A stretch of 64,000 nt of DNA from Laetmonice hystrix (GCA_965235115.1 OZ249453.1:3410001-3474000); one strand, 5' to 3'; shown: positions 1 to 62,829, numbered from the stretch's first letter. Translations and numbers: made by a program. Notes: generated by a model not told the origin, from the letters alone.

Positions 1-722
1 TCTGCTAAACCTCCAGGAGGTGGACGCAAACAGCTCACAGTCTGCTAAACCTCCAGGAGGTGGACGCAAACAGCTCACAGTCTGCTAAACCTCCAGGAGG
101 TGGACGGAAACAGCTCACAGTCTGCTAAACCTCCAGGAGGTGGACGGAAACAGCTCACAGTCTGCTAAACCTCCAGGAGGTGGACGGAAACAGCTCACAG
201 CCTGCTAAACCTCCAGGAGGTGGACGGAAACAGCTCACAGTCTGCTAAACCTCCAGGAGGTGGACGGAAACAGCTCAGAGTCTGCTAAACCTCCAGGAGG
301 TGGACGGAAACAGCTCACAGTCTGCTAAACCTCCAGGAGGTGGACGGAAACAGCTCAGAGTCTGCTAAACCTCCAGGAGGTGGACGGAAACAGCTCACAG
401 TCTGCTAAACCTCCAGGAGGTGGACGGAAACAGCTCAGTCTGCTAAACCTCCAGGAGGTGGACGGAAACAGCTCAGAGTCTGCTAAACCTCCAGGAGGTG
501 GACAGAAACAGCTCAGAGTCTGCTAAACCTCCAGGAGGTGGACGGAAACAGCTCAGAGTCTGCTAAACCTCCAGGAGGTGGACGGAAACAGCTCAGTCTG
601 CTAAACCTCCAGGAGGTGGACGGAAACAGCTCAGAGTCTGCTAAACCTCCAGGAGGTGGACGGAAACAGCTCAGAGTCTGCTAAACCTCCAGGAGGTGGA
701 CGGAAACAGCGCAGTCTGCTAA
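1..722. repeat. Minisatellite, 38-40 bp unit (TCTGCTAAACCTCCAGGAGGTGGACGGAAACAGCTCACAG), about 18 copies, runs off the window start
   Basis: Direct tandem periodicity. Confidence 0.97.
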
Positions 723-1890
723 TAACCAGTTTGAGGTGTCACGCTGGAGAGGGTGTGCGGAACTGAAGCGAGGAGAGAATGTCGGCACAAAGGCGGCGGA
801 GCTGGAGGAGGCGGGGCCGCCCTGTCTGCCCTCCCGGGCCGACATGGTTGACCTCCCCGATCCAATCGTTGGCTCTGACGTAAGGCAGGGTCAACAGGTT
901 CACGGCCCGGGGGACTCTTGACGTACACGGCGCCGCCCCCTCCAGAGTTAACTACAGGAGTACGGTGGGAATACTTTACTCATCCTCCAGGGCGAAGAAC
1001 GTGTGTGGATGCGTGTTTCTTTGTCCTCAGTATCCTCAGTGTAGATGTACTAACAGTAGATTTGACGGCCTCACAATTTATAGTCAGCGGAGAGAAAGGC
1101 CATAGGCTCATATTCCCGTATAGTTGGGCATTTGGAAAGGGGGGGAGAATTGGACATGTAGAAAGAAACGGGCTCCGTAGATGAATAAGTAGGTGTGTAT
1201 AACATAACCAGAACTGTGCACCGGATGTGTAAATCACCGTTAGTATTTATGTGTGGCAATTCTCCAGACCATATCTTGCATTTCACTCCCGGCAGGGGCA
1301 CTTGGCCGTGGCAGTAGTGCGCATGGCAGGGCCTCTCCGACCATCTGCAAGGGGCAATGTATCAGGGGGGCACGCCTGCAGGGCACACTTGGGGGTCCCG
1401 GGGCTCGAGTCGCTAATTTATAGGCGAGTTACAAACTGACACAAATTGAAAAGGCATGTCAGGGTGGCCGGGGGAGGTTGTGTGGTAAACATTGCACATA
1501 TCTTGTTGCAGATCTGAAATAAAGGCCGAGACAACGAGCCTTTTAACGATCTCTGCGTGTCAGATAGAGTGGATTGGGTCTCAAATATTCTAACATTGTG
1601 AGGGGGTCTAACGTCTGTCCCGACGCGCGAGTGTTAAAGAGACCAGCAGGGCTTTGGCTCTGAGAGTGTCGCTAAATGTAACCGCGGGTGTTGGTAAGGA
1701 TCATAATCTGTTCTGTGAGGCTGAGCACAGACGGCAAGAATTGGACTAAAAGTTAATCTGGATTATGTTTGATGATGCTAAAACATTTGATATATGATGA
1801 GCTAAAAACTGGCACTTTAGGACTGAAAAAACGACTGAAAAAACGGACTTGTATCAATAAGAAATGTAGTCAGTATTCAAAGTCCCTAAC

Positions 1891-2504
1891 TGTCAGTATT
1901 CACAGGGTACTAGAGACAGTGAGTCTCTGTCAGTCCTCACAGTGTACTAGAGACAGTGAGTCTCTGTCAGTCCTCACAGTGTACTAGAGACAGTGAGTCT
2001 CTGTCAGTCCTCACAGTGTACTAGAGACTGTGAGTTCAGTCCTCACAGTGTACTAGAGACAGTGAGTCTCTGTCAGTCCTCACAGTGTACTAGAGACAGT
2101 GAGTCTATGTCAGTCCTCACAGTGTACTAGAGACAGTGAGTCTCTGTCAGTCCTCACAGTGTACCAGAGACAGTGAGTCTCTGTCAGTCCTCACAGTGTA
2201 CTAGAGACAGTGAGTCTCTGTCAGTCCTCACAGTGTACTAGAGACAGTGAGTCTCTGTCAGTCCTCACAGTGTACTAGAGACAGTGAGTCTCTGTCAGTC
2301 CTCACAGTGTACTAGAGACAGTGAGTCTCTGTCAGTCCTCACAGTGTACTAGAGACAGTGAGTCTCTGTCAGTCCTCACAGTGTACCAGAGACTGTGAGT
2401 TCAGTCCTCACAGTGTACTAGAGACAGTGAGTCTCTGTCAGTCCTCACAGTGTACTAGAGACAGTGAGTCTCTGTCAGTCCTCACAGTGTACTAGAGACA
2501 GTGA
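1891..2504. repeat. Minisatellite, 37 bp unit (CAGTCCTCACAGTGTACTAGAGACAGTGAGTCTCTGT)
   Basis: Tandem periodicity; unit contains an AGAGAC/GTCTCT hairpin. Confidence 0.97.
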
Positions 2505-2711
2505 CTCCCTAACTAACATTGAAGGAGGGTTGAGACGTTCACTTAAAGTATCATGAATTGATAATGATTGAAAATGTATGGGTAGAACAAAAGGAGACAG
2601 AAAACAAGTCAGGGTATCTCGTTCATCATCTGCGCGGGAAATTGAGGGGAAATTCACAAAGATTGATTATCGGCGCTCTCATACTTCAGCCTTAAAACTT
2701 GTTACTATGGA

Positions 2712-3874
2712 TTGTGGTTGGGGAGATTGGGTAACTTGTTTCTATGGAAGGTTGTGGTTGGGGAGATTGGGTAACTTGTTTCTATGGAAGGTTGTGGTTG
2801 GGGAGATTGGATAATACGGAGCTAAGCCTTACAACTTGTTTCTATGGAAGGTTGTGGTTGGGGAGATTGGGTAACTTGTTTCTGTGGAAGGTTGTGGTTG
2901 GGGAGATTGGGTAACTTGTTTCTGTGGAAGGTTGTGGTTGGGGAGATTGGGTAACCTGTTTCTGTGGAAGGTTGCGGTTGGGGAGATTGGGTAACTTGTT
3001 TCTATGGAAGGTTGTGGTTGGGGAGATTGGGTAACTTGTTTCTGTGGAAGGTTGTGGTTGGGGAGATTGGGTAACTTGTTTCTGTGGAAGGTTGTGGTTG
3101 GGGAGATTGGGTAACTTGTTTCTGTGGAAGGTTGTGGTTGGGGAGATTGGGTAACCTGTTTCTGTGGAAGGTTGTGGTTGGGGAGATTGGGTAACTTGTT
3201 TCTGTGGAAGGTTGTGGTTGGGGAGATTGGGTAACTTGTTTCTGTGGAAGGTTGTGGTTGGGGAGATTGGGTAACTTGTTTCTGTGGAAGGTTGTGGTTG
3301 GGGAGATTGGGTAACTTGTTTCTGTGGAAGGTTGTGGTTGGGGAGATTGGGTAACTTGTTTCTGTGGAAGGTTGTGGTTGGGGAGATTGGGTAACTTGTT
3401 TCTGTGGAAGGTTGTGGTTGGGGAGATTGGGTAACTTGTTTCTGTGGAAGGTTGTGGTTGGGGAGATTGGGTAACTTGTTTCTATGGAAGGTTGTGGTTG
3501 GGGAGATTGGGTAACTTGTTTCTGTGGAAGGTTGTGGTTGGGGAGATTGGGTAACTTGTTTCTGTGGAAGGTTGTGGTTGGGGAGATTGGGTAACTTGTT
3601 TCTGTGGAAGGTTGTGGTTGGGGAGATTGGGTAACTTGTTTCTATGGAAGGTTGTGGTTGGGGAGATTGGGTAACTTGTTTCTGTGGAAGGTTGTGGTTG
3701 GGGAGATTGGGTAACTTGTTTCTGTGGAAGGTTGTGGTTGGGGAGATTGGGTAACTTGTTTCTGTGGAAGGTTGTGGTTGGGGAGATTGGGTAACTTGTT
3801 TCTGTGGAAGGTTGTGGTTGGGGAGATTGGGTAACTTGTTTCTATGGAAGGTTGTGGTTGGGGAGATTGGGTAA
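2712..3874. repeat. G-rich minisatellite, 40 bp unit (GGGAGATTGGGTAACTTGTTTCTGTGGAAGGTTGTGGTTG), about 29 copies
   Basis: Tandem periodicity; explains the 354-aa track ORF. Confidence 0.97.
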
Positions 3875-5177
3875 TACGGAGCTATGTCAAGGTTTAATAT
3901 GCTCACGTCTTGCGCAATAAGCCGAAGGTTTGTAAGGATGTGATGTAGTGTCTAGGCAGAACAGATTTATAGGTCAGTCAGTGGTCATTCGGTTAGAATA
4001 TATCGTATTCAAAGTGGTAATCATAAACAGATATTGTCCTGGAGGGATGGTAGGAGGGGTCAAAGGGCAAGATAGGATGTATATCTGATATATATAAGCT
4101 TGTTTACACCTGCGGCAGGTGCGTGTCCTTATCGCAGCGCAGATATACTCCATTAATTTCTTACACATAAAAAGGTTACTTGAGAGAGGATGGATTGTGT
4201 AAACCAAGAGGGTAGTTTTCTGGGTGACTTTCTCCTCAAGGATATGAAAAAATAAGGAGTTTTTATTAACACATGTGTATATGACGTGTGCGCCTCATTG
4301 AACACGAGGACAGAAGTACGTCGGTGTCCCGGGGGGCGAGCTTACATGGTCTCTTTGTCTCGTTTTGATTCCTTGATTGTTGGAGCTTTAAAAATTATAT
4401 TTTTGATATAATAAACGTAAACGTCTCGTTCCGTCGTTAGTTCTTAGCAGTATTTGGGAAAAGTTTTAATTACAGACACGTAGGGACCAATATCATCATG
4501 TTGTAAGCCATAGTAGAGACGGGGTTCCATTAAATCCTTCAATTCAAGGGGACCAAAGATGCAGTCAGCAGTGGCGAGGCTTTGTGAACCTTGTAACATG
4601 AAATACAGCTGTCCCCACCTCGACGTGAATAAAAATGTCGACAGCTGACCCCGATCCTTTTGACCTTGGCGAGCGGATCTGCTCCAGTGGCGGTATTATC
4701 AAGAGATTTATAGTGATTGTCTGTAAAATTTTAATAGATTGTCAAACTGATATGTTTTTACGCCCACTGAGGGTGATTTCGGTGATAGGGGATAGGGTAG
4801 GGAAGACGTGCAGGCTGTGCATGGCTGGCAGAGAATAAATCAATATACAACACTCAACAGTCAGACATGGCATTGGCAACAATAACAGAAGGCTAGGGTT
4901 GGAGAGACCTCGACTCGCACGGTGGAGGCAACGGGAGACAACCAGGCTCGTTCCATGTGGCATGTCTCCTGACAAGTGTCTAAGACAGCCAGTTTATTGT
5001 TTCTTGTCTGATGTTCAAAAGACCCTCACACGGAGACGACAAAGGGGGAAGTCGACTCCCTTGCAGGCATATCGTGTAGATTAGAGAGAACTATGCGCCT
5101 TGTGTTTTGCCATAATAAAAACGTTGATATTGTTTTTTCTGCCCGACTGATGATGTGTCTTTTTGTTGTGTGTTCAG

Positions 5178-5313
5178 GGCGACTTGGTGGAGTTCTACTA
5201 TTACTGGAAGAAGACGCCGTCGGCTGCTAACACCCGGCCCCACCGGCGACATCGCCGGCAGAACGTCTTCAGGCGGCAGCCCCGCACCCCACGACCGCCC
5301 TCCAGCGAGTATT
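5178..5313 (+). CDS. RERE: Atrophin/RERE exon, end of SANT domain ([33 protein letters not shown]...RPPSSEY); upstream exons are outside the window
   Basis: ttcag acceptor and gtaagt donor; closely matches [18 protein letters not shown]...HRRHRRQAVFRR...RPPSSEF; phase 0 to 1. Confidence 0.95.
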
Positions 5314-6111
5314 GTAAGTGTACAACTCTATCACAGGCCGGGGTAGCTTAACACTGTACCTCGGATACAGGGATACAGTGTTATCGCACCCTCCCCCCTT
5401 GTTTTATGAAGAATGCCCGCCAAATATCGCCCAAGGAAGTGTCCACGAGGAAGTCCCCTTCACCCCTCGTCTTCTTGGGGAAAATAAGATACTTTCTCTC
5501 TGAATCTGGGCGAATAAAACCTGGAAATACATACATGTAGTGTTGTTCAGGAAACTCAGCATAATTATTACAAATGTATTATGTCGAGTGTGAAAATTTC
5601 CAGTAAGGGAATTAGTATTTTGATTGAGAATAATCCGATGGGTACACGGGATTGGTGAGGTCGTCGATGGTTGTTTGTATGTGGCACACAGTCGGACAGT
5701 TCTTGATCAAACGGCAGGTTCGCATCCCCAAGAAACATTGAGTGTAGTTTGAGATTAAGATGGGATCAGAGGAAGAGGAATAGGTTTGACATTCAATATT
5801 ATACTCCAGACATAACAATGGATTTATATTCTCAATGAAATGTAATACTTCATCACAGAGTAAGGACTTGAAGGATACCGCTGTGTTTTGTTTATAGAAT
5901 TTACCTTTAGATCTTTGCATCAAAGAACTAGCAATCAGTGCAGAAGGATTCTGTGGCTACCAATCTTAAACATGTCGCAGGCATCATGCACCTGTATCTA
6001 GGTGCATTATGCCTGCATACCTAAGGCACCGATCTGGTAGAACCGTCAGATAAGGCACATGGTTGCTTGGCTGCGGAAGGCGACAGGAGTTCAATCTCAG
6101 GGCCTCTTTAA

Positions 6112-57133: not shown

Positions 57134-57306
57134 CTGGAGAGAGGTCGCAAAAATACTAGTAGGTATTAGTGGACAGGCCCAAGCGGCGATAAAAAGCTTC
57201 AATCTAATCACCTCCCCCCTGATATTGTTGATTCCCACACGTGGTTCGTCCTCCCAATAGGGTGTGCAAGTACATGGGTCAAGATAAAACATGAGAAAAC
57301 ACGAGT

Positions 57307-57659
57307 TTGGGTTTGGTTTGGTCCTAATGTCGTCTTAATCACTTCAGCACTGTGAATCCCATGGTTAGGGTTTGGTTTGGTCCTAATGTCGTCACTTCAG
57401 CATTGTGAATCCCATGGTTAGGGTTTGGTTTGGTCCTAATGTCGTCTTAATCACTTCAGCACTGTGAATCCCATGGTTAGGGTTTGGTTTGGTCCTAATG
57501 TCGTCTTAATCACTTCAGCACTGTGAATCCCATGGTTAGGGTTTGGTTTGGTCCTAATGTCGTCTTAATCACTTCAGCACTGTGAATCCCATGGTTAGGG
57601 TTTGGTTTGGTCCTAATGTCGTCTTAATCACTTCAGCATTGTGAATCCCATGGTTAGGG
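57307..57659. repeat. 59 bp tandem repeat, about 6 copies, in an M13 peptidase intron
   Basis: GGGTTTGGTTTGGTCCTAATGTCGTCTTAATCACTTCAGC... repeated. Confidence 0.95.
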
Positions 57660-58850
57660 CGCTTTCATTGTACTACCTTATAAAACAAGAGTACCAACCT
57701 GTTTTACGTATGAAAGAATACTTTTCATTTTTTAAATGTCAAAATTGACAGAAATCTTGTCGATGTTTGAAAGTGTGTTTTCTCATCCTATGTTAAACCA
57801 ATGGAGGGATTGTGACGTAACATTCGTTTAGGTACCAAAGCGACGCGTTTCAAGCTCATTTACTATGGGGGTGCCAAGTGTTACCTTTAAAATTTCGTAC
57901 ACGGAATTCTTTTTCGTAAACGAAATCATAATTTCGTAGACGAAATTCTTTTTCGTAAACGAAATTATAACACGAAATTCTTTTTCGTAGGCCTAAACGA
58001 AATTATAATTTAATTCTTTTTCGTAAACGAAATTATAATGAATGAGACTGAGACCGAATTCGTTTGGACTAAAAATGTTTTATTACGACATTATAAGACA
58101 CAGATAAAATAATAAAAGAAATGTTGGTATATGATAAGAGGGGTAATAAAACATTGATGAGGGTTTTCGTGGGAAATATATTTTTAAAGAGAGGGTTGTT
58201 TAGTGGAGTGAGTTTAATGGTTAGTAAGATCGTTTGAGATTTCAGTTTCTTTATTCTTAATGGCCAGTGGGAGGGATTTAAGGTAATGAAAGGTTAATAT
58301 GGGATGGGTGGGAGGGTAAAAGACGTGCGTGTCGGAGTGTGGCGGAGAGGAAAGTGACCGAGTGAGAGTCGGGGAAGGTGAAGGAAAGTTGGAGCCGGAA
58401 GTGACGTATAGATTGCGGATATTCAAGTCTCAGACCATTCATTATGCGCAATGAAATACATTACGGACAATGAATGAGACTGAGACCGAATTCGTTTGGA
58501 CTAAAAATGTTTTATTACGACATTATAAGACACAGATAAAATAATAAAAGAAATGTTGGTATATGATAAGAGGGGTAATAAAACATTGATGAGGGTTTTC
58601 GTGGGAAATATATTTTTAAAGAGAGGGTTGTTTAGTGGAGTGAGTTTAATGGTTAGTAAGATCGTTTGAGATTTCAGTTTCTTTATTCTTAATGGCCAAA
58701 CATTGAAGTAAAAGCATCGGGGACTGCAGTGTAGAGCTTCTTGGGAACGTAGGCATTAATAGCTGCCGATGACCACGTCCCGTGGCGCATTATGTCCGCC
58801 TGCGGCACACCGACCCGGGCGCAAGCCTGGGCGCCACAGTTTCTTTATTC

Positions 58851-59156
58851 TTAATGGCCAAACATTGAAGTAAAAGCATCGGGGACTGCAGTGTAGAGCT
58901 TCTTGGGAACGTAGGCATTAATAGCCGCCGATGACCACGTCCCGTGGCGCATTATGTTCGCCTGCGGCACACCGACCCGGGCGCAAGCCTGGGCGCCAGA
59001 CCGGCGGAGTGAGTGGACCGTCGCTGAGTTCGCTGCCGGATGCCCCAGAACGAGTAGGATGGCCCGGAGGTATGTCTCCAACCTTGTCGGGGTCAGCGGA
59101 GTAGATGGATCCAGCATGAAGGCCGAGCTATCGGCCGATAAAGGAACATCTCGTAT
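58851..59156 (-). pseudogene. C-terminal catalytic half of the tyrosine recombinase (HSLRRSGA...RHGTWSS...AINAY)
   Basis: HxxR, H/W and Y catalytic residues present; continues the upstream frame after a 2-nt shift in TATATATA 59154-59161. Confidence 0.88.
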
Positions 59157-59989
59157 ATATAGCGTCTCCACGCCAGGACCGGGCAATATCTTGAACCCAC
59201 ATATGGGACAGGGATCGCCACCCTGTCCGCTGGATCGGAGATCGTTTTGGACGAATTGACGGTGAGCCATATGCGATCGCCTGCGTCAGAGACGTCCCCC
59301 CGAGTAAGCGTGTGCGGCGTGGGGCCAGAGGGCCCAGGGAGTAAGTTGGACTGTCGGAGCAAGGAGCAGAAACCCATAAGAAGTGCGGCCCGGGCTGTTA
59401 AAGCGTGTCCGCCCAAAGTTTCTAATATATCACAGACATCTTTAATGTCCTGATAAGATAGGGCTGGTGCCCGGCGAGGTACATGAGACGATAGTCGTGC
59501 GACTCCTTTGATCATGGTTGCAATGTCTGGAGCCGTAAGGTTCGTGACGTCGCCCCCGGATCCAGCGACGTACGTTTTTGCCCCTGAGAGATAGTTTTTT
59601 ATAGTAGCCGTGCTTTTAAAACTGTATAATTCGGATGTGAAAATACAGTCTAGCTCCACAGGTATAAGGCGAGAAAGACCGTACTGTGACACGAGGGCCT
59701 CCGCAGTGTCGGCATATGCTTTGCTTAAATGGTAGCGACTGAGTGCGTCCGCCAGAACTAAGTCGACCCCCGGCTGGTGATATACCATTATTTCAAGCTG
59801 ATTCGTGGCTGCGACCATCCATAGCTCACGTGCGCATGCGGCGAGTACGGGGTCCTTTGTTTTTCCTGTGTTCAGCGCATACATTGCGGCCATATTGTCC
59901 GTTTTTACCCTGACCGTGTGAGCTACCAGGCGTTGAGGAACGAGAGTTTTAACTGCCATTACAACGTTTATAGCTTCGGTAAGGTACAT
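59093..59989 (-). pseudogene. Truncated DIRS-type RNase H fused in frame to a tyrosine recombinase; frameshifted near 59158
   Basis: EAINVVMAVK...TDNMAA...ARELW...QPGVDLVLADALSR, then TIKNYLSG...GFCSLLRQSNL...SKT...YCPV. Confidence 0.85.
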
Positions 59990-60367
59990 TAGGAACGATT
60001 TCGGAGTCGATGTGCGGTTTAGTTTGAGTAGATCGGGGTGTAAGGTGAACTGTGCCCAGTGTGGTGGCGGCTGCGGTGTGGGATCCCTGAGGGATACAGA
60101 GCCCCGTCTTCCGAGGTTCGGTGAAAGGTTCGTTCAGTGTGCCAGTATTCAGGGTTGCTGTGGAATGGTACGGAGAAATTACAGTGTGGGGCCCTTGAGG
60201 GATACAGAGCCCCGTCTTCAGAGGTTCGGTGAGAGGTTCGTTCAGTGTACAAGTATTCAGGGTTGCTGTAGAGTGGTACGGAGAAATTACAGTGCGGGGC
60301 AGAGTCTCGGAGACGGTCGGAGTGGTGGAGCGACAATGGTTTTCTGGGCGAGTATCGGACTCCCCAG

Positions 60368-61606
60368 TCAATTCGGAAACCCCAATGAGGATGGTTGGTT
60401 GTCCTGCCTATCGAATGTTTTTGAACGGCATACGTTAAGAGAGTGAGGAAGGAACAAACACTTTTTCAAGAGGCAGAATTCGCATACGTGGAGTTGACGG
60501 TATCCATTCGCAACGTGGTGTGAGTGTTGGATGCATGTTCCTCGCTGATACGCACGACAAGGTGGTGCAGGCTTGGCAGATTTAAGAAAGTCTGGTATGT
60601 CGACGCTAACGGTCGTATTGTTATCGTTCTGTTGCGGTGTGGAGTTTTGTGTCCCCATGTGTGATAGGCGAGTCTGAAGGCGGTCAATTTCATATGTGTT
60701 AGACCATGAGAGCTTCTTGTCGAAAATCTGCGCGCACACCTCTTCCGACCAGGCCCTGACTGATAGCCAGTCATATGTCCTGGCGTCATTAACAACTTGC
60801 TCAATATGTCTGTTCATAAGATTTACAGTTTCATTGTCCTGGACAAGCCTCGTCATTTGAGTGAAACCCCATACATATTCGGCGATAGTGCACTCTGCAA
60901 GTTCGAGTTTGACATGCTTTGGTCCCCGCGTCACAAACTGGTGTGGAAATGCTCCAGACTGCTTACCTTTTCCAGCTGTATGGAATGGGGACACTACGGC
61001 GTGGAGAGCGTCAGCCACGCGACGTGCTAATATTGGGTCCGCCTCGAGCTGTGCTACGGTGGTTGGCGGGTTCCCCGCGCGCTCGTGGTGCGTTGTGGGT
61101 CTGCTGGGGTGGGACTTGGGTGGCGAGGAATGACGGGCAACCAGCGTCCTATCGTCTGCCCCCAGGCCGGTGAACCTTTCCGGTAATGAAAGTGCCTGAG
61201 GGGCGTGGGCGGTCCTGTCGGCTGTTTCGCAGTGTCGGTGGTCAGCCGGCGGGGTGCTTGGTATGTCGGGCTGGCGGGAGTTGGTGACCCGTTGGCCTTG
61301 TACTGTTCCTCCAAGTTCAGACGAGGCGTCGGCGGGTTCCAGTCGGGGTGGTGGGGTAGTATGACGAGCTTCTGGAGTGGTGTGGTCAGGCGGTGGTAGT
61401 TGGCCGCTTAGTCGAGTGAGAAGTTCTGTAATGTTTGTTAGCTTACTTTCAATATTGTTAACTCTGTGGCTGACTTGTCCAATTGCGTCGGCATTACTTG
61501 CGACGGTTGTTCGACGCTGAGCCCGAGGGGTCTGCGGCTGGCTTTCCTCGTCGGTTTCTTCGAGTGGTGTGTGTCGCCGTGTTATCGTTTTCTTTGTGCG
61601 CCCCAT
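60368..61606 (-). CDS. Gag-like ORF1 of the YR retroelement (412 aa from MGRTKK) with a C-terminal Cys/His finger
   Basis: Open frame; ATG 7 nt after repeat A1 (the track start at 61723 lies inside the repeat); CRAYQRGTC...HVCEFC...H...C motif typical of Ngaro-like gags. Confidence 0.8.
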   Translation of the reverse strand: MGRTKKTITRRHTPLEETDEESQPQTPRAQRRTTVASNADAIGQVSHRVNNIESKLTNITELLTRLSGQLPPPDHTTPEARHTTPPPRLEPADASSELGGTVQGQRVTNSRQPDIPSTPPADHRHCETADRTAHAPQALSLPERFTGLGADDRTLVARHSSPPKSHPSRPTTHHERAGNPPTTVAQLEADPILARRVADALHAVVSPFHTAGKGKQSGAFPHQFVTRGPKHVKLELAECTIAEYVWGFTQMTRLVQDNETVNLMNRHIEQVVNDARTYDWLSVRAWSEEVCAQIFDKKLSWSNTYEIDRLQTRLSHMGTQNSTPQQNDNNTTVSVDIPDFLKSAKPAPPCRAYQRGTCIQHSHHVANGYRQLHVCEFCLLKKCLFLPHSLNVCRSKTFDRQDNQPSSLGFPN

Positions 61607-62829
61607 TGCAGTGTAAAAGACGTGCGTGTCGGAGTGTGGCGGAGAGGAAAGTGACCGAGTGAGAGTCGGGGAAGGTGAAGGAAAGTTGGAGCCGGAAGTG
61701 ACGTATAGATTGCGGATATTCAAGTCTCAGACCATTCATTATGCGCAATGAAATACATTACGGACAATTTCGTACACGAAATTCTTTTTCGTAAACGAAA
61801 TTATAATTTCGGACGTAGACGTAATATCCATTTCGTATACAGAATGACATTTCGTCTATGCCATAATCAATTCCGTCAACGAAATTCATTTTCGGCTGAA
61901 TGGCATTTAGTATACACGAAATGGACATGATGGAGACGAAATTCCATTCTGTAGAATGGATTATTGTGGAGACGAAATAACATTTCGTAGACAAAATTTA
62001 TTTTATAGGCACGAAAGGCAATTCCGTGGACAGAATTGATTATTATGTAGAAGAAATTGAATTTCGTACACGAAATGGACTTTAAGGAGACGAAATTCCA
62101 TTCTGTATACGGAATAGGATTGTTGAAACGAAATTATACTTAATAGAAGGAGCAAAATGTGCCATCATTCTCGTAGACGGAATGGATGTACTGTGGAGAC
62201 GAAATAGAATTTCGTACACGAAATGAATACTATGGAGACGGAATTCTATTTCGTACACGAAATGGATGATTGTTGAGACAAAAGTGAATTTCGTTGACGG
62301 AATTGATTTTTGTGTAGACGAAATGTCATTTCGTTTACGAAAAAGAATTTCGTGTACGAAATTATAATTTCGTTTACGAAAAAGAATTTCGTGTACGAAA
62401 TTATAATTTCGTTTACGAAAAAGAATTTCATGTTCGTGACATGTAATGGATACTGTGGAGACAAAAATCATTCTCGGAGACAGAATTGATGTACTGTGGA
62501 GACGAAATAGAATTTTGTACACGAAATGAATACCATGGAGACGAAATTCCATTTCGTAGACAAAATGGATGATTGTTGAGTGAATTTCGTTGACGGAATT
62601 GATTATTGTGTAGACGAAATGATTATAATTTCGTTTACGAAAAATAATTTCGTGTATAAAATATTATAATTTCGTTTACTAAAAAGAATTTTGTGTACGA
62701 AATTATAATTTCGTTTACTTCGTTTACGAAATGGAATTTCGTGTACGAAATTATAAAGGTAACACTTGGCACCCCATAATTTACACGTCAAGAGCACCTT
62801 GCACGCCCTAATATATATAACCAACGTAC

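Follow-up and report, generated by a model that had tools for sequence, protein, structure and literature searches.

Structure of the element

A stretch of 64,000 nucleotides (nt) from Laetmonice hystrix (GCA_965235115.1, OZ249453.1:3410001-3474000), hereafter the window, carries on its minus strand a Ngaro-type retroelement that lacks reverse transcriptase (RT); all positions given without a label are window positions. Its parts follow one another as A1, open reading frame 1 (ORF1), the 108-nt repeats, the site of the deleted RT, an RNase H remnant, the site of a second deletion of 200 nt, a tyrosine recombinase, the 162-nt repeats, B1, A2, a spacer and B2 (Table 1). The family to which it belongs occurs in three forms: form A, which includes the window copy, is without RT and has both deletions; form B is without RT and does not have the second deletion; and the third form bears RT. 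The window copy is very probably a young form-A derivative of a Ngaro-type family, the RNA of which was reverse transcribed by RT supplied in trans.

The split direct repeats A1...B1-A2-B2 had been reported as free of mismatches in a preliminary description of the window sequence, and this is borne out on the minus strand: A1 and A2 agree at 156/156 positions and B1 and B2 at 230/230, and a longer match of 159 nt between the A repeats has a single mismatch, at position 157. B1 and A2 overlap by three nucleotides, ATT, which end the one and begin the other. Conserved blocks common to a sister family occupy the first ~85 nt of A1, and an AATAAA at 58079-58084, 42 nt ahead of the element end, lies within a block that is also conserved in that family. 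The units of both internal tandem duplications differ from one another, again as described.

Comparison with RT-bearing copies located the first deletion at 59976-59978, where 1,430 nt are absent (a count that includes one copy of the CGA microhomology). The missing part comprises the whole RT, recognized in RT-bearing relatives as Pfam RVT_1 (E 1e-11), and the first Asp of RNase H (ECDAC motif), so that the loss proposed from the window sequence is confirmed by the relatives, at a junction placed differently from the original estimate of about 59990. The other proposed junction, at about 59625, was found at 59626/59625; here 199-200 nt present in form B are absent, comprising the end of ORF2, a short spacer and the recombinase N terminus. 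The RNase H remnant retains the E of LEAINVV, the D of KTDN and the D of LADALSR, and the second deletion places it in one frame with the recombinase, giving 378 amino acids (aa). Contigs of reads from the source sample branch exactly at the RT junction and at 59625-59626. Splicing was rejected as the origin of the deletions, as none of three has GT..AG ends and microhomology is 0 to 3 nt in all.

Table 1. Features of the RT-less element in the window (from the 5' end of the element on the minus strand)
Feature	Position	Strand	Remarks
Whole element, form A, 3732 nt	58037..61768	(-)	10 other copies align over 1-3732 at 99.3-99.5%
A1, 156 nt; first three letters ATT (crossover trinucleotide)	61613..61768	(-)	Identical to A2
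ORF1, 412 aa; ATG at 61606, stop at 60368-60370	60368..61606	(-)	Open frame
108-nt tandem duplication, two units, ~92% between units	60076..60291	(-)	Upstream of RT, within the ORF2 frame
RT deletion junction, CGA microhomology	59976..59978	(-)	Comparison with RT-bearing copies
RNase H C-terminal remnant	59626..59975	(-)	Aligns with the 3' end of the 737-aa RT/RNase H frame of RT-bearing copies
Second deletion junction, 59626/59625	59625..59626	(-)	Comparison with form-B copies
Tyrosine recombinase without its first 27 residues (numbered from the form-B ATG)	58851..59625	(-)	Homologue profile matching Cre
162-nt tandem duplication, two units, 2 mismatches	58675..58998	(-)	Recombinase C terminus, stop codon and first 24 nt of B
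B1, 230 nt, starting in the last recombinase codons	58469..58698	(-)	Identical to B2
A2, 156 nt; B1/A2 boundary a copy of the presumed circle junction	58316..58471	(-)	Identical to A1
Spacer between A2 and B2, 49 nt	58267..58315	(-)	
B2, 230 nt, ATT at its end	58037..58266	(-)	Identical to B1

Copies of the deleted form at other loci

The assembly from which the window derives (627 Mb in 35 contigs; one haploid assembly of one individual) contains 10 further full-length copies, each aligned over 3,732 nt at 99.3-99.5% identity. All 10 have both deletion junctions and both tandem duplications. They lie on the chromosome-scale contigs C1, C2, C7, C8 and C12, and the window copy lies on C30. No similarity was found among the 1.5-kb flanks of the 11 form-A loci, indicating that the copies are independent insertions; segmental duplication was rejected as their source for this reason. 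The copies have a mean pairwise divergence of 0.42%. They share diagnostic substitutions, which would not be so if the deletions had formed anew each time from a full-length RNA. In a maximum-likelihood tree of the 5' 1,793 nt shared by the forms, the 11 form-A copies make up one side of a branch (support, 82/86), and the subclades nested within them, one with support of 97/92, indicate that the deleted form was copied in several rounds, one after another.

The deletions are thus not unique to the window locus, and recent copying of the deleted form, as first suggested, is upheld by its presence at 11 loci in one clade with subclades, by near-identical A/B pairs and by the absence of RT. Because form A cannot supply RT to itself and yet was copied repeatedly and recently, RT must come in trans. 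The terminal A and B repeats and the junction motif of form A are those of the RT-bearing copies (the motif exactly, the shared segments at 98-100%).

An origin of both deletions by decay of a complete element after its insertion at the window locus has a negligible probability, since 10 other, unrelated loci have exactly these two junctions and the RT junction is present in seven form-B copies as well. No observation favors such decay: the sole lesion specific to the window locus is a 2-nt insertion near 59154-59156, absent from all other copies and from the read contigs, which breaks the 378-aa frame. The window copy itself is dead on arrival or recently damaged.

At locus L007 (C7:10054596-10054773), a form-A copy lacks its last 2 nt. 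Directly after it come 180 nt from the recombinase region (element positions 2574-2753), the whole being enclosed in a satellite of ~70 nt, and the locus appears to be rearranged or to contain a nested insertion.

Proposed regeneration of the repeats, and insertion site

Comparison of A1 with A2 and of B1 with B2 within each form-A copy gave four mismatches in 11 x 385-387 nt. Variants in A or B that distinguish one copy from another are always found in both repeats (alignment columns 79/3388, 81/3390, 144/3453 and 3215-6/3649-50), and two such concordant variants are private to the window copy. A form-B copy on C11 likewise has the same G>A at the start of A1 and at the B1/A2 junction. This concordance fits rebuilding of the split repeats at each round of copying and is expected under the replication model of split-repeat elements, gene conversion being the sole alternative.

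Each copy starts and ends with ATT. Across all forms, the base ahead of this ATT in the 5' flank is C in 16 of 23 distinct insertions, and the 3' flank begins with AT in 16 of the 19 flanks that could be scored. No target-site duplication accompanies insertion; in ~20 insertions, the junction and the target, (C)ATT(AT), have ATT in common. The window copy lies in a 39-nt unit of a repeated host element, and the uninterrupted unit in the other arm of that element has a single ATT at the position matching the insertion point. The presence of ATT at both ends of the insertion and of a single ATT in the intact unit fits recombination between the ATT of the B/A junction and that of the target, in agreement with the species-specific junction trinucleotide described for DIRS elements (PMC7192593). 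A read-contig joint of 58031 to 61791, which skips the element, was rejected as evidence of an empty allele, as it has 21 nt on one side, lies inside the repeated host element and could derive from paralogous host repeats.

Predicted proteins

The preliminary description had named an intact gag of 412 aa. The open 412-aa ORF1 is indeed present, and "gag-like" is a label assigned by position. ORF1 matched no Pfam family, and a protein-atlas search returned no usable match. Its C-terminal block is Cys/His rich and conserved, and the protein has 42% identity with ORF1 of the sister family (E 1e-87). The frame is open in 10 of 11 form-A copies and in all three intact RT-bearing copies.

A recombinase profile built from 38 homologues matches Cre recombinase over its full length (E 2e-8). 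The residues R117, K153, H230, R233, W256 and Y264, at the catalytic positions R, K, H-x-x-R, W and Y, are conserved. The Pfam match is marginal (E 0.06-0.09), and a search of solved structures with the single recombinase sequence gave no match, Cre being reached through the homologue profile alone. Form A is without the segment that aligns to roughly the first two helices of the Cre N-terminal domain, and its 378-aa RNase H-recombinase frame is open in 7 of 11 copies. In form A, a predicted recombinase catalytic domain has thus been kept, joined to the RNase H remnant. The earlier picture of a gag-retaining parasite holds insofar as the element is nonautonomous and has kept ORF1, but not in the sense of retaining gag only, since the recombinase catalytic domain has been retained as well.

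Synonymous and nonsynonymous changes among the variable sites stand at 5:11 and 17:25 in ORF1 and at 4:5 and 10:11 in the recombinase. About 24% synonymous changes are expected by site count; the synonymous excess is mild, and indecisive once transition bias is allowed for.

Family members in the genome

The 21-nt B1/A2 junction motif occurs with zero or one mismatch at 26 places, all within the element family, and a search allowing up to three mismatches found matches in this family only. Besides the 11 form-A copies, the family includes seven RT-less copies of the form-B type, in at least five of which a 331-aa recombinase frame is open. Five of the seven lie on C18 within 8.56-10.41 Mb. Two of the form-B-type copies on C18, L022 and L029, share their 5' flank through local duplication and were scored as one insertion; L022 has the 108-nt repeat in four units.

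Three RT-bearing copies of 4,583 nt are intact (C2:10.99M, C6:26.49M and C7:28.83M), with ORF1 and a 737-aa RT/RNase H frame open, A1 identical to A2 (0/156 mismatches), B1 identical to B2 (0/229) and ATT/AT junctions. Three further RT-bearing copies have an additional internal deletion of RT. The RT-bearing copies have an out-of-frame deletion of 610 nt that removes recombinase residues ~28 to ~230, and the junction of this deletion is common to five loci, indicating that the recombinase-less form was likewise copied. At C3:3.08M, RT and RNase H were deleted independently. The RT/RNase H frame is -1 relative to ORF1 and overlaps its end by ~45 nt (60368-60420), and no canonical slippery heptamer was seen in this overlap.

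Matches to RT and to the recombinase core were cross-tabulated over the 627-Mb assembly at the DNA and protein levels, with all first-look candidates scored, and no locus had both. A copy at C19:13.75M was rejected as complete: it has 8.6 kb of foreign repeats inside, its recombinase is missing before residue 135, its RT contains stops, and it ends at B1. The autonomous family with the same A and B repeats that had been expected was not found in the assembly, where the RT-bearing members are without the recombinase core. In older fragments with 92-95% identity (C3:6.636M and C5:27.29-27.30M), the 3' end of RT, RNase H, the 200-nt segment and the start of the recombinase core are contiguous, which indicates that a complete ancestor existed.

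The tandem duplications differ in their distribution. The 108-nt duplication is found with the same mismatches in every form, including the RT-bearing copies; it is therefore ancestral, predates the loss of RT and cannot serve, as had been suggested, to date the deleted form. Two 162-nt units occur in forms A and B, as against one in the RT-bearing copies and in L016, and this duplication is confined to RT-less forms.

Among other relatives, an older array at C5:27294514-27304268 consists of three units of ~3.1 kb with 92-95% identity. A unit contains RT fragments, RNase H, the 200-nt segment, part of the recombinase and B-A-B, and ORF1 is absent. The array may have arisen by insertion of a multimer or by local duplication. 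Several copies of distant relatives, with 70-88% DNA identity to parts of the element, lie at C19:16.8-20.0 Mb and appear to have no RT between the ORF1 region and the recombinase end.

Source of the missing enzymes

The family may tentatively be viewed as two lineages, RT carriers and recombinase carriers, that mobilize each other and also mobilize form A. RT and RNase H would be provided by the recombinase-dead copies and recombinase by form B, perhaps also by the form-A fusion, with no autonomous member left. The absence from the assembly of any family locus with both RT and the recombinase core accords with such a division, the nearest candidate being the dead, interrupted and truncated copy on C19, as do the three intact RT-bearing copies with open ORF1 and RT/RNase H frames, perfect A and B repeats and ATT/AT junctions. 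The 610-nt recombinase deletion at five loci indicates that the defective RT carrier was also copied, form B offers at least five open 331-aa recombinase frames among its seven copies, and terminal branches are of similar length in all forms. On the other hand, the assembly represents a single haplotype of one individual, the intact frames may reflect youth only, and the sister family could supply either enzyme; the proposal is drawn from sequence comparison, and no test placed the amplification of the two defective lineages at the same moments.

Supply of recombinase, RT or both by the sister family, an autonomous Ngaro family, is doubtful. The sister family has amino acid identities of ~61% for RT, ~60% for recombinase and 42% for ORF1. 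One of its copies (L037) is complete: it measures 5,286 nt, its ORFs encode 402, 813 and 310 aa, and identity is 100% between its A repeats (151 nt) and 97% between its B repeats (189 nt). RT and recombinase frames are open in at least two copies of the sister family. The two families differ at one of 15 letters of the B/A junction core. They have conserved blocks in common, both within the first ~85 nt of A and at the 3' end of B (the AATAAA block among them), and the sister target is likewise (T)CATT/AT. Nevertheless, cross-recognition is unproven at 60% amino acid identity, the terminal sequences outside the core differ, with the 21-nt motif confined to the element family, and an RT source within the family itself is present and equally young. 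A complete master with the same A and B repeats, either unsampled or recently lost, is an unlikely source or mobilizer of all the defective forms. The older contiguous fragments on C3 and C5 reveal that a complete ancestor existed, and young repeats may be missed or collapsed in assemblies, but none of the 26 elements with the junction motif is complete, and a master active in more than 20 insertion events should have left copies of its own. Among the loose ends listed for read contigs of the source sample, those at the two junctions lead to RT-bearing and form-B sequences; a rare variant could escape the contigs. Whichever helper is considered, the mobilization of the RT-less form in trans is left intact.

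L037 (C2:10171600-10179000, with the element at 541-5826) has 27-nt tandem repeats between ORF1 and RT.

Proposed history and mechanism of copying

A complete ancestor would have had the order ORF1, RT/RNase H, recombinase, B1, A2 and B2, and would then have acquired the 162-nt duplication. Loss of 1,430 nt containing RT at a 3-nt microhomology would have produced form B, with its recombinase intact, and loss of a further 199-200 nt would have produced form A by joining the RNase H remnant to a recombinase with a shortened N terminus. Form-A RNA would then have been reverse transcribed by RT supplied in trans over several successive generations of source copies, A1 presumably being rebuilt from A2, and B2 from B1, in every cycle. 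Insertion would proceed by site-specific recombination between the ATT of the B/A junction and the ATT of a (C)ATT(AT) target, leaving ATT at both ends and no duplication. We infer the RNA and circle intermediates after the model of Cappello and of Poulter and Goodwin, and the identity of the helper likewise.

Some points weigh against repeated copying of form A through RNA. Gene conversion could in principle homogenize the A and B repeats, although it would need to be complete every time. The open frames in most copies may be what youth alone would give. The sequence was found in four sequencing runs, all of the source sample and none recorded as RNA, which contain no direct evidence of transcription or of extrachromosomal forms. 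In one small run of unrecorded kind (X4), contigs extend across both junctions with uneven depth along the element, a pattern that no more than hints at RNA.

Classification and comparison with known systems

Ngaro elements were defined by Goodwin and Poulter in 2004, as summarized in PMC4157794. The structural hallmark of the group, A1...B1-A2-B2 with the internal repeats downstream of the recombinase, is present in the window copy, and the tyrosine recombinase is recognizable from the Cre profile and the conserved residues, its N terminus being gone in form A. RT and a full RNase H are absent from form A but present in close family members with the same repeats, so that form A is a derivative of a Ngaro-type family rather than an autonomous member of it. 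In form B and in the RT-bearing copies, the last RNase H Asp lies ~37 aa before the end of ORF2, which is separated from the recombinase ATG by ~120 nt; this spacing leaves no room for a methyltransferase domain, and none was found by Pfam between RNase H and the recombinase. The absence of a methyltransferase is a feature that separates Ngaro from DIRS1-like and PAT-like elements. The placement is thus a structural one, in which split direct repeats, gene order and the missing methyltransferase, as defined in PMC4157794, suggest a Ngaro affiliation. With Ngaro elements, the family further shares the order of ORF1, RT/RNase H and recombinase on one strand in complete relatives and the lack of a target duplication. 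Unlike them, the window copy and its 10 siblings are without RT, their recombinase is shortened and fused to an RNase H remnant, and the assembly holds no complete member.

Internally deleted elements that keep their cis signals and are packaged, reverse transcribed or integrated by the proteins of relatives are known among long terminal repeat (LTR) retrotransposons, in the form of nonautonomous or complementary families such as gag-defective BARE2 with BARE1 and the LARD and TRIM elements. BARE, LARD and TRIM elements differ from form A in using integrase and LTRs. Another parallel is SIRE of Trypanosoma cruzi, a truncated derivative that shares terminal repeats with the coding element VIPER and is thought to depend on it (PMC6681497). 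SIRE is ~430 nt and noncoding, and its mobility is undecided (PMC6681497), whereas form A is 3.7 kb with ORF1 and a recombinase frame and, by its shared junctions at independent loci, was copied as such. For DIRS-1 of Dictyostelium, action of RT in trans on the RNA of an RT-less element was demonstrated experimentally (PMC7192593). In that system, an internal copy of the joined ends is needed to restore the termini, and new insertions have a junction trinucleotide at either end (PMC7192593). In contrast to form A, DIRS-1 has inverted terminal repeats and an internal complementary region, and the experiments used engineered constructs rather than natural, amplified deletion families (PMC7192593).

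Implications

Mobilization of nonautonomous derivatives in trans is a familiar idea, already represented by SIRE as a derivative of VIPER and by the trans action of DIRS-1 RT. The searchable literature yielded no account of an amplified Ngaro lineage without RT, nor of any tyrosine-recombinase retroelement family split into RT-carrier and recombinase-carrier lineages. To our knowledge, little is known about the replication of tyrosine-recombinase retrotransposons, and experiments have been confined to DIRS-1 of Dictyostelium. The copies described here offer natural evidence for proteins acting in trans in an animal-type Ngaro element, for rebuilding of the split repeats in every cycle, as seen in private variants present in both repeats of one element, and for integration by way of a fixed trinucleotide that also occurs in the target, (C)ATT(AT).

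If the family does consist of two reciprocally defective lineages, the genes for replication and integration would be divided between two elements in a manner comparable to multipartite viruses, with a bearing on how cis preference, parasitism and cooperation shape transposon families. Annotation pipelines that demand both RT and recombinase would miss all ~26 young members of the family.

Sequence surrounding the insertion

The host element interrupted by the window copy is foldback-like, ~1.17 kb in length (57868-58036 and 61769-62775), and probably a nonautonomous DNA transposon. Its terminal inverted repeats are at least 57 nt long, with 93% identity, and start GGGGTGCCAAGTGTTACC; its arms are built of 19/39-nt units (TTTCGTAAACGAAA...). 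A 59-nt satellite of ~6 units with 94% identity lies just outside the host element at 57305-57659, and the very high read depth in the bin 57661-57821 indicates that part of this region is a high-copy repeat.

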